Shown here piece by piece: positions 12,472 to 15,047 of a stretch of DNA of 17,086 nucleotides. Each line of letters starts with the position of its first letter. Positions within the stretch are counted from its first letter, which is position 1. The stretch spans positions 1 through 17,086 of the forward strand of contig BAAFSQ010000216.1 of NCBI GenBank assembly GCA_054661495.1. Direction: 5' to 3'. The notes below the pieces were generated by a model. The model saw nothing but the letters and a program-made list of their open reading frames with translations, ran no database searches and was not told where the DNA came from. The translations under genes and the position numbers were made by a program. The stretch is from Zygophlyctis sp. KS116 (lineage: Eukaryota > Fungi > Chytridiomycota).

Positions 12472-13257
12472 TTACTGGGGGGTTTTATAAATGTTTAGAC
12501 TCATCTTTTGTAAGTTTAGTAAAAGTACCACAAAATATTCATTTTCCATTGTTTTTAGAGGTACAATTGATGAATTAGGAACCTGTTCTTTTCCACAAGA
12601 GACGGGAATCCATGAATTCAACTATCTTTAATTTTAAAATTTACATCTTCTGGAGGACCTTTTTTATTCACATCTACAATAATAGCAAATGTAGTTTCTA
12701 ATAGTTTAATCAAAACTTGTAAAATTACGCTCTAAAATGGGCTTTAGTAGACTATCACAAGTACTAATCTTTATCAAAAATTCCCTGAAATGTCTTTCTA
12801 AAGCATCTCTTGTCAACATTACATTTTTTGAAGAAATTTCTTTCATAGATGTTCCCATGTCTGAAATCAATAATGATAGATCAAAGCTAAAACGTTCTGA
12901 ATTTAGTAAATTGAAATACCTTTAGGAATCCCTTTTAGATCAGAAATCAATACTATTATTTCCTTGATCAGCCCCTACTTTTGAATAAATATTTATACCA
13001 TGGATAATTCTGGTTGTATTGATTTAAATACTGAATCGACATAATCATTTAATGTCGGCTCGGAGCATGCCTTGATCGGAACTCCGAAAACGACTCTCTG
13101 ATCAAACACATCTATCTCATCAATTTTATAAATTACCCAGAGGATACACTTGCCTAATATATAATATATAATGGATTGCAGATTTTAGAAAACTAGACAG
13201 TGAATCTAATAGATTTTTTAATAGATGTAACATACTCAACAAATCTTCATATTCCAT
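12472..13257 (-). CDS. REV7: HORMA-domain DNA polymerase zeta subunit Rev7/MAD2L2, ~201 aa, up to 8 exons (absent from the ORF track)
   Basis: Introns: 13206-13235 (uncertain, stop-free 3n), 13112-13136, 12975-12998, 12897-12919, 12698-12728, 12622-12644, 12505-12528. Spliced motifs FLKSAIHYILYIRQVYP, FGVP, PTLNDYV, PKERFSFD, FLIKISTCDSLL, TFAIIV, SWIP and IVPLKTM match recalled MAD2L2. Confidence 0.9.
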
Positions 13258-13266
13258 TGATAAGAT

Positions 13267-14110
13267 CTATGCAGGGTTCACTGAAAACAATTGAACTGAT
13301 CCATCTCCTACATCTAATTCAAACGTAATGCATAGAATGGGTGGTTCTGAATCGTAGTCTATTGAATCTTGAATTGGTTTAGAGACAGAAAATGTCTGCA
13401 TTAAACGCAAATGACTGATTGCGCTCTTTACTGACTCTTCAGACATATCTCGTAAACCATTTAAATACGTAGTAAAGAATCCATTCACCATATTCACTGC
13501 ATAAGAATATCTAGAATCTGATTTTTTAACTCGAGGTAAATCTTGAAGTGTTTCCAAGATTCTTGTACCATAACTAAAGACTGTAGTTGTGCATTCTAGA
13601 TTCATTGATTCAATCGACTCAAGAATTGTTAAATTCTTAAATTCACCGTCCAGAATAGATGGTACACATAAATTTAACTGTGATTAAAGGCATTAATGCA
13701 TACTTTGGCGTGATAAAATATTGTACAATTAGAAAAGCTTTCATACAGTGAATCAAAATTTGGGATTTTCATGGCATCACAAACTGATAATAAACTTATG
13801 GGATCATAAACTAGATCTGATGATATTAAAGCTAATGAATGCCTAGCAGTCTAAAATTTAATTATGATTTGAGACTTGCCTGATCTGCATCGTTTAATAG
13901 CGTTTCCTTGTCCCAATATAAATAAAAATATTTTAAAATTAGAGACTCTGGTAAAATTCCATTATTTTCTGCAAAAGGTTTAAGATATTCACAAGGCTCG
14001 GACTCTATAATCTTTGGGAGACATAATCTCTTGTTTAATAAAGCCCTAATGGTATCAGTTGGTGCAAATGGATTCCCATCTATCTATGATTGATCAGACA
14101 TCTTACTCAT
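13267..14110 (-). CDS. TEAD YAP-binding-domain (YBD)-like protein without a TEA DNA-binding domain, ~253 aa, 4 exons
   Basis: Introns: 14080-14106, 13851-13879 (GC-AG), 13678-13703. There is colinear similarity to the recalled TEAD1 YBD: LILKYFYLYWD~LRLVEFSAFLE, RHSLALI~KHLFVHI, FYHAKLNL~FFLVKFWADLN, LESIESMNLECTTTVFSYGTRILE~[34 protein letters not shown]~LLCMACVFEV. Confidence 0.75.
13851..13879 (-). other. 29-nt GC-AG intron
   Basis: The junction is CAG|gcaagtctcaaatcataattaaattttag|ACT. Only this junction keeps the frame open; the nearby GT donor leads to immediate stops. Confidence 0.75.
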
Positions 14111-14363
14111 AATAAATTATTATTTAATCAAACTAGATGATTCCGATAAATACATTTTTGATTTTAATAGCAACGTCCGATAAATGAAGTTGAGCCTTTT
14201 GATTTAGTTCCAGTTTCTAGGCTAGGCTGTGGTTTTTGATTATGTAAAGTAGAAAAATTACTCAAAATAAAAATAAAAAATTTGAAATGAGCAATCGTTC
14301 AGCTCCCAATACCAATTTTATTTAAAAAACTGTTGGTCCACGCCATGAAAAACGTATAATCGC

Positions 14364-15047
14364 CTAGTAAAGTCTCACAGCTAATTTTTTAAACAATATA
14401 AACTTACGTTTTCCCATAGTACTCTTCAAGTACAAAGACTTGACATTTTGCCAATTCTTCTTTAGCAAAGAAACCAAAAAGTTGATTGAAATCATAGTAT
14501 TGTTAACCAATTGATCTTCACTCATCTTAACATGTCCAACTGCAACTCCAAGACATAACACCTTTTTCAACTGGAATTTGATTGTAGATTTTAAATCATT
14601 AACTTTTTCTTCCAAGCTGTCATTATGATTGACAGGAGTAGGAAATTTACCAGCCTTTGATAAACCAGGACCCAAAATTCTAGGAATTTGTTTAATCAAT
14701 GCTTCTGAAGCCAAGAAAGCATCATACTTTTTAGCCAATTTCTTGATTAATTTCTTATTCTTATTCAATTTCTTCAAATCATCAACAGACATATATTGGA
14801 GTCCAATTGCCTTTGCCTGATCGATATGGGCAGCATCAGCCAAAATACAAATCTTCATTTTTGGCTTTGGGACATTTGGCAATTTAACAGTTCCAGAAAA
14901 ACGCTTATCTCTTTGAGGATCATAATTCTTTAGACCGATTTGTAATTCCACGGTTTCAGCAAACTTTCGGACTTTTTCTTCTGTTGAATAAGTCAAGAGA
15001 TTCTTGATCTCTTCTCTCACTGATGACGCTTGAACTTTGCTCGACAT
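14364..15047 (-). CDS. RPL1: 60S ribosomal protein uL1 (L10a), ~218 aa after removing one intron
   Basis: Motifs: [27 protein letters not shown] and [12 protein letters not shown]. Removing intron 14381-14407 restores the conserved C-terminus STMGKPVRLY. Confidence 0.98.

Follow-up and report, generated by a model that had tools for sequence, protein, structure and literature searches.

The DNA analyzed here (17,086 nt, below called the window) contains, on the minus strand at 14110–13267, a four-exon gene whose model, rebuilt from the sequence, specifies a protein of 253 amino acids (Table 1). We call it the YBD gene, after the YAP-binding domain (YBD) of TEAD proteins that its product resembles. 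Its upstream neighbor, on the same strand and about 250 nt away, is RPL10A. The three introns are ultrashort, at 27, 29, and 26 nt. Exon 2 (exon A) encodes an N-terminal motif specific to this clade (NGNPFAxTDTIRxLLxKRL), then a linker that varies, and then LKYFYLYWD, which is the first strand of the YBD. Exon 3 (exon B) carries an RHxLA, FP-type helix and ends in a Lys that aligns to the conserved Lys at the mouth of the TEAD pocket, and exon 4 (exon C) supplies the C-terminal two thirds of the domain.

Table 1. Positions of the YBD gene and its features in the window
Feature	Position	Strand	Basis
Coding exon 1: ATG and first base of codon 2	14107..14110	(-)	Sequence, five-lineage comparison
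Intron 1: 27 nt, GT-AG, in-frame TAG inside	14080..14106	(-)	Orthologue comparison
Exon 2 (exon A): residues 2-68	13880..14079	(-)	Sequence and profile match
Intron 2: 29 nt, GC-AG (GCAAGT...TAG)	13851..13879	(-)	Orthologue comparison
Exon 3 (exon B): residues 69-117, N-terminal half of YBD	13704..13850	(-)	Profile alignment
Intron 3: 26 nt, GT-AG	13678..13703	(-)	Orthologue comparison
Exon 4 (exon C): residues 118-253 and stop TAG (13269-13267)	13267..13677	(-)	Pfam, PDB, AF2/Foldseek, RNA contigs
Most conserved block, LECTTTVFSYGTRILETL, homologous to TEAD β7-β8 hairpin	13546..13599	(-)	Column conservation, PDB alignment
Helix-turn-helix (V-N-G-F-F-T-T-Y-L-N-G-L ... A-I-S-H-L), homologous to TEAD α3-α4	13408..13488	(-)	HMMER alignments, AF2, conservation
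Spacer, ~250 nt, RPL10A ORF end to YBD-gene start codon	14111..14363	(-)	Six-frame TEA scan

Orthologous loci, selection, and RNA

When the last exon was used as the query in a word search, five metagenome ORF fragments were recovered at 68–96% identity. The contigs on which they lie provided four syntenic loci from freshwater metagenomes, whose proteins are 96% (L001) or about 70% (L003, L004, and L005) identical to the window protein. Exons A, B, and C are present at each of the four, with the reading frame changing between exons, and all three intron positions are kept in four of four; intron lengths and sequences vary. The spliced product of ~253 residues that an earlier sequence-only reading of this DNA had proposed thus stands. 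In L001, L003, and L005 the gene immediately upstream, in the same orientation, is RPL10A, the L004 contig ending about 200 nt before the start codon, and a gene for an RRM protein and THR1 are found downstream in all four loci.

The start context, aataatttattATGA followed by GTAAG (ATGA at the end of the exon, GTAAG at the beginning of the intron), is conserved in five lineages. At the site of intron 1, the orthologues contain 26–28 nt of unrelated sequence with stops. Although the proteins are only about 70% identical across lineages, the 11 nt upstream of the ATG are almost invariant and may constitute a conserved start or promoter-proximal signal. Intron 2 has GC-AG ends in the window and in L001 (3727–3755), whereas the intron that L003, L004, and L005 have at this site ends in GT-AG, which looks like a recent GT-to-GC change that is tolerated by this 29-nt intron. 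We also considered a ciliate-type genetic code, in which the TAG at 14086 would be read as Gln and intron 1 would not exist. This was ruled out by the conserved ATGA/GTAAG preceding unrelated stretches of 26–28 nt in five loci and is also contradicted by the long ORFs of the window, which use the standard code.

On the other side of the gene, the next ORF on the minus strand has its ATG at 13257, 9 nt past the YBD stop codon. Several short ORF pieces between 13257 and 12706 (minus strand) resemble a multi-exon gene, and Pfam, run on these pieces exon by exon, gave no match. The spacing from stop codon to ATG is equally tight in L001 and is about 135 nt in L003.

The dN/dS ratio is 0.16 between the window and L001 and 0.17 between L003 and L004; in deeper pairs, for which synonymous sites are saturated, it is about 0.1. 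The YBD gene is under purifying selection. As for RNA, two metatranscriptomes, produced in separate studies, each contain one 162-nt contig that lies over 13260–13442, at the 3′ end of the last exon. Since no RNA contig in these two metatranscriptomes crosses any intron of the YBD gene, and the libraries may contain DNA, transcription is only weakly indicated. For the neighboring gene, a spliced RPL10A contig in one of these metatranscriptomes (run X23), from which a 26–27-nt intron close to the 3′ end of RPL10A (14380–14406, minus strand) has been removed and which ends at 14328, short of the YBD gene, is direct RNA support for the splicing of ultrashort introns in this organism. Near-identical DNA of the locus is present in freshwater, wetland, estuary, and river metagenomes (runs X1–X22) from about a dozen studies, so that the organism or its close relatives appear to be widespread in inland waters.

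Homology and predicted fold of the product

For comparisons with known domains, the exons were queried singly (13880–14080, 13704–13850, and 13270–13677, all minus strand). Exon C matches the Pfam YBD family (PF17725) with 21.9 bits (E 1.6e-4; curated cut-off, 23 bits), a score that covers 136 of the about 205 domain residues. All six exon C orthologues match the same family (best E 7.5e-6), and the chytrid family members P0010 and P0008, which are described below, reach 60.5 and 40.4 bits. When the sequences in the PDB were searched with exon C, the best 36 matches were all TEAD or Scalloped YBDs (TEAD2, E 1e-3), and a profile of the chytrid family matched the TEAD4 YBD over nearly the whole domain (E 5.9e-17). 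Exon B matches positions 75–123 of a full-length chytrid YBD profile (E 9.5e-5), and LKYFYLYWD, with which exon A ends, aligns to positions 51–64 of this profile (E 3.7e-6). As the matches of the three exons follow one another in the expected order, the YBD starts near residue 45, and about 205 of the 253 residues are colinear with the TEAD domain, the extent that the sequence-only reading had estimated.

A profile built from the exon C orthologues was run by HMMER against 1.84 billion representatives and gave 114 matches. Proteins containing both TEA and YBD had E values between 1e-10 and 1e-13 (lowest, 5e-13), those of chytrid YBD proteins being between 1e-14 and 1e-20. A local TEA model detected a TEA domain in 44 of the collected proteins, and Pfam confirmed the TEA and YBD pair in every such protein on which it was run. 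With a TEAD protein from Podila as the query, the YBD locus was the only match in the window's genome (E 3.2e-14), and it is the one YBD locus found there. In all probability, therefore, the gene encodes a stand-alone TEAD-type YBD.

Word searches for an annotated full-length protein of the window's lineage, with exon C and with P0002 as queries, recovered nothing but ORF fragments of metagenomes. Structure prediction was therefore performed with AF2 on the closest full-length homologue, a Globomyces protein of 254 amino acids, and separately on exon C of the window. The Globomyces model (pLDDT 82.6, residues 1–49 disordered) superimposes on the TEAD2 YBD with Z 20.0 over 188 residues (rmsd 2.8), and its best 50 Foldseek matches are all TEADs (E 4e-16). 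The exon C model (pLDDT 86.1) also has TEADs as its best 50 Foldseek matches (TMq 0.61–0.67), the comparison with TEAD2 giving the best E, 1.3e-7. The predicted fold is an Ig-like β-sandwich with a helix-turn-helix, preceded by a short disordered N terminus. The next structural neighbors of the Globomyces model are PDE6D (Z 9.4), UNC119A (9.3), UNC119B (8.4), and RhoGDI (7.1). The comparison with the TEAD YBD that the sequence-only reading had called for is thus in hand from both models, and the likeness to PDE-delta and UNC119 that it had pointed out is borne out, as these proteins and RhoGDI are the nearest after TEAD.

The TEA domain and the chytrid YBD family

As the sequence-only reading had stated, no TEA motif is found in the ~45-residue N terminus or in the ~250-nt spacer up to RPL10A. 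A local TEA model was run in six frames on the window, on the orthologous loci, and on the 10 kb that flank the genes of Spizellomyces and Globomyces on each side, and it detected nothing. A family-accession search of the genome with the Pfam YBD overlooked even this locus, and its PF01285 counterpart was weighed only weakly. Since the accession searches proved insensitive, protein and profile queries were used for the genome instead. The queries were PF01285, one TEAD protein, two TEA domains in isolation, and a 10-sequence fungal TEA profile, and with these no TEA domain was found in the 12.7 Mb assembly. Because this assembly is fragmented into 1175 contigs and the prefilter of the genome search is coarse, we describe the domain as not found, its absence being unproven. 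In a word search with a TEA domain, there is no chytrid among the best 120 of 2641 matches, which tells little about the 2500 or so below them; the named entries in this set are almost all from Mucoromycota or Mortierellomycota, with one ascomycete (Saitoella); several entries are nameless.

The non-detection accords with published work: a secondary loss of Scalloped (Sd) in chytrids is described in PMC4761220, which cites Sebe-Pedros 2012, and Table S1 of PMC7035326 gives 0 for both Scalloped and Yorkie in Spizellomyces punctatus. The main text of PMC7035326 states that the Yorkie/Scalloped complex was completed in Spizellomyces punctatus, which contradicts its own Table S1; the table is followed here. 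YAP has been reported to be absent from fungi.

The nearest full-length relatives of the window protein, identified through cluster look-ups, come from about 12 genera of chytrids and are YBD proteins without TEA. They include proteins from Globomyces (KAI8894796), Homolaphlyctis, Batrachochytrium dendrobatidis and B. salamandrivorans (an example from Batrachochytrium being XP_006676207), Spizellomyces (XP_016607785), and Fimicolochytrium, as well as from Geranomyces, Zopfochytrium, Polychytrium (XP_052969927), Quaeritorhiza, and Neocallimastix. Most are 230–300 amino acids long; some have long N-terminal extensions, and no other Pfam domain was found in these longer members. They share with the window protein its TEA-less architecture, similar length, and conserved motifs. 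The window protein differs in being about 30–37% identical to them, in its own N-terminal motif, and in the ultrashort introns of its gene. Several members bear the automatic UniProt name "YAP binding domain-containing protein," and we found no paper that uses this name or their locus tags or that describes a chytrid YBD family. As far as we could find, a chytrid-wide family of stand-alone YBDs is therefore present in databases and apparently undescribed, and the window gene is a new, divergent member. Hence the earlier claim of a stand-alone YBD in a fungus is upheld insofar as the gene is real and under purifying selection, yet the gene is no one-off.

When 75 YBD regions were placed in a quick maximum-likelihood tree, which is unrooted and without holozoan and amoebozoan outgroups, the main split was (SH-aLRT 94) a TEA-less clade of 25 rows against a clade of 50 rows that holds all 35 of the 35 TEA-bearing rows. 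The 25-row clade consists of chytrids and includes the window lineage, on a long branch. The members of the 50-row clade that were looked up are all from Mucoromycota, Mortierellomycota, or Zoopagomycota. A survey of the two architectures, which the sequence-only reading had proposed, thus places YBD-only proteins in chytrids and TEA plus YBD in these three phyla. The TEA-less rows of the 50-row clade are nested among TEA-bearing rows and look like partial gene models. Two TEA-less YBD proteins within this zygomycete clade, P0044 (Apophysomyces, 303 aa, on a 280-kb contig) and P0050 (308 aa, from Mortierella sp.), may be shortened gene models; alternatively, they may be paralogues or isoforms that became TEA-less independently.

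How did the TEA-less form arise? Holozoan TEADs are fused, with both TEA and YBD (PMC7035326). Since the split in the tree coincides with the split between species and the holozoan proteins are fused, the simplest reading is that there was a single TEAD gene from which TEA was lost on the chytrid stem. We infer that the ancestral opisthokont TEAD gene, once its TEA domain had been lost, most likely gave rise to the chytrid family. It is also possible that the chytrid YBD is an older, TEA-less paralogue, a reading for which a tree without an outgroup leaves room; domain loss would be our choice between the two on the unrooted tree.

The zygomycete proteins that contain TEA and YBD have the fungal YBD signature in common with the chytrid family (ECTTxxYSFG, VNQFFxAFLxG, and PLLxxxYEFxxGxG) and, like it, Asn at the Cys position, whereas they have kept the TEA domain and fall on the other side of the main split. 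In HMMER alignments to TEAD2 and TEAD4, the acylated Cys of TEAD aligns to Asn in the window protein (exon C residue 65, codon 13485–13483), and this column is Asn in 83% of the TEA-bearing fungal rows. The sequence-only reading was thus right that the acylation Cys is replaced; since Asn is also present in TEA-containing zygomycete TEADs, the replacement is a fungal trait and not a mark of the free form of the YBD. The Lys at the pocket mouth of TEAD is kept.

Possible roles and known systems

Conservation within the fungal YBDs peaks at three places, which are identical in the TEA-less and TEA-bearing sets: the hairpin L-E-C-T-T-T-V-(Y/F)-S-(F/Y)-G-x-R-I-L-E-T, which corresponds to TEAD β7-β8; the helix V-x-x-F-F-x-x-(F/Y)-L-x-G, which corresponds to TEAD α3; and an A...L...Q.F segment after α3. 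In animal TEADs, the β7-β8 edge strand forms interface 1 and the α3-α4 groove forms interface 2, and these hold the strand and the helix of VGLL and YAP. At interface 3, which serves the omega-loop of YAP, the C-terminal Tyr that contacts YAP seems to align to Phe in the window protein and to be variable in chytrids; we regard this as a lead only.

As the conserved hairpin and groove are the sites at which animal TEADs bind a VGLL- or YAP-type strand and helix, the role that we consider most likely is that of an adaptor. The protein cannot bind DNA through a TEA domain and, with Asn at the canonical site, cannot be S-acylated there. It would act as a protein-protein adaptor that captures a short strand-plus-helix motif of a putative fungal partner. 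Since the hairpin and the helices also belong to the core of the fold, their conservation is no proof of a binding site, and the putative binding surface, like the putative partner and its kind, is what we infer. As a whole, the best explanation is probably that the protein is a TEAD descendant in which the DNA-binding domain is missing and which acts as an adaptor that binds peptides; the adaptor mechanism, taken by itself, we put forward more tentatively.

The main rival of the adaptor reading is that the protein carries a lipid or lipidated cargo, using non-covalently, for a fatty acid or the lipidated tail of a protein, the central hydrophobic pocket in which TEADs hold palmitate, as do PDE-delta, UNC119, and RhoGDI. 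That these proteins follow directly after TEAD2 among the structural neighbors (Z 9.4–7.1 versus 20) and that the Lys at the pocket mouth is retained are consistent with such a carrier, and the role would suit a TEA-less and probably non-nuclear protein. However, Z scores of 7–9 are common for shared arrangements, the sequence identity is 4–14%, and the acyl-acceptor Cys is absent. Moreover, the strongest conservation is on the surface elements that correspond to the TEAD peptide sites and not specifically on residues that line the pocket. We consider a non-covalent lipid carrier rather unlikely.

Less probable still is that the protein is one subunit of a split transcription factor, in which the YBD would be brought to DNA by a TEA-only gene product or by an unrelated factor, through either the N-terminal motif or a surface of the sandwich. 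Of the first 19 positions of exon A, where the N-terminal motif (NGNPFAxTDTIRxLLxKRL) lies, 17 do not vary among the five loci, and motifs of this kind often dock onto partners. Nevertheless, it is absent from the other chytrid members, whose N termini are unrelated and predicted to be disordered, no TEA-only gene was found, and nothing links the protein to DNA.

The sequence-only reading had suggested that a free YBD could be a cofactor decoy. Such a protein would act as a dominant negative, titrating a TEAD cofactor in the manner of TEAD4-S or TEAD4-deltaN, and its architecture is indeed that of the TEAD4 isoform without TEA, a cytoplasmic protein that has been reported to sequester YAP (PMC10888684). 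A decoy, however, needs a TEAD with which to compete, and none was found: five queries detected no TEA domain in the genome, the YBD locus is single, and both Scalloped and Yorkie are reported to be absent in chytrids (PMC4761220; PMC7035326, Table S1). This suggestion was therefore set aside, and we regard it as highly improbable. Least probable of all, and next to negligible, is an artefact of the gene model, in which further 5′ exons including TEA would lie beyond RPL10A or on another contig: although RNA that spans an intron is lacking and the first exon is only 4 nt, five loci that have diverged share the start context and this 4-nt exon, the four whose sequence extends that far all have RPL10A as the immediate upstream neighbor on the same strand, the RPL10A RNA contig stops at 14328, before the YBD gene, independent NCBI models in at least 10 chytrid genomes begin with Met and without TEA, and there is no TEA within 10 kb in two of those genomes.

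A broader reading can be envisioned, in which fungal YBDs, both TEA-linked and stand-alone, serve a conserved pre-YAP partner on the hairpin and groove, and the ancestral function of the domain was independent of both TEA and YAP. We consider this possible, if somewhat doubtful. Were it true, a module of YBD and partner would have outlived its DNA-binding half by hundreds of millions of years in chytrids, and the loss of Scalloped would be a half-loss.

TEAD, the endpoint of Hippo signaling, is a target for drugs, and discussion of its YBD is usually confined to the docking of YAP, TAZ, and VGLL. In chytrids, the YBD probably has a role for which neither DNA binding nor YAP is required. A YBD that is kept under purifying selection, without TEA or YAP, across a fungal phylum would show a function that belongs to the domain itself, and the chytrid family would correct the view that Scalloped was simply lost in chytrids. 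Since Spizellomyces punctatus carries a member of the family (SPPG_05125) and can be transformed (PMC7213984), it offers a direct means of searching for whatever partner or ligand the YBD had before YAP.

How does the protein compare with known systems? Its predicted sandwich shares its overall topology with PDE6D, UNC119, and RhoGDI (Z 7–9.4), but this match is far weaker than that with TEAD (Z 20) and there is no detectable sequence similarity. With TEAD and Scalloped (PF01285 plus PF17725), the likeness is closer: the YBD is homologous over its whole length, with the same sandwich and α3-α4 helix-turn-helix, and the β7-β8 hairpin and pocket-mouth Lys are conserved. The window gene differs from these proteins in that it has no TEA domain, with none detected in the genome, in that the acylated Cys is Asn, in that its YBD is only 15–20% identical to animal YBDs, and in that YAP or Yorkie is not reported in its lineage. 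The mammalian TEAD4-S and TEAD4-deltaN resemble it in having a YBD without a DNA-binding domain, and TEAD4-deltaN is mainly cytoplasmic (PMC10888684). However, these are isoforms of a full TEAD gene that act on YAP beside full-length TEADs, whereas in chytrids, a lineage apparently without TEAD or YAP, the TEA-less protein is the sole form and is fixed in the genome.
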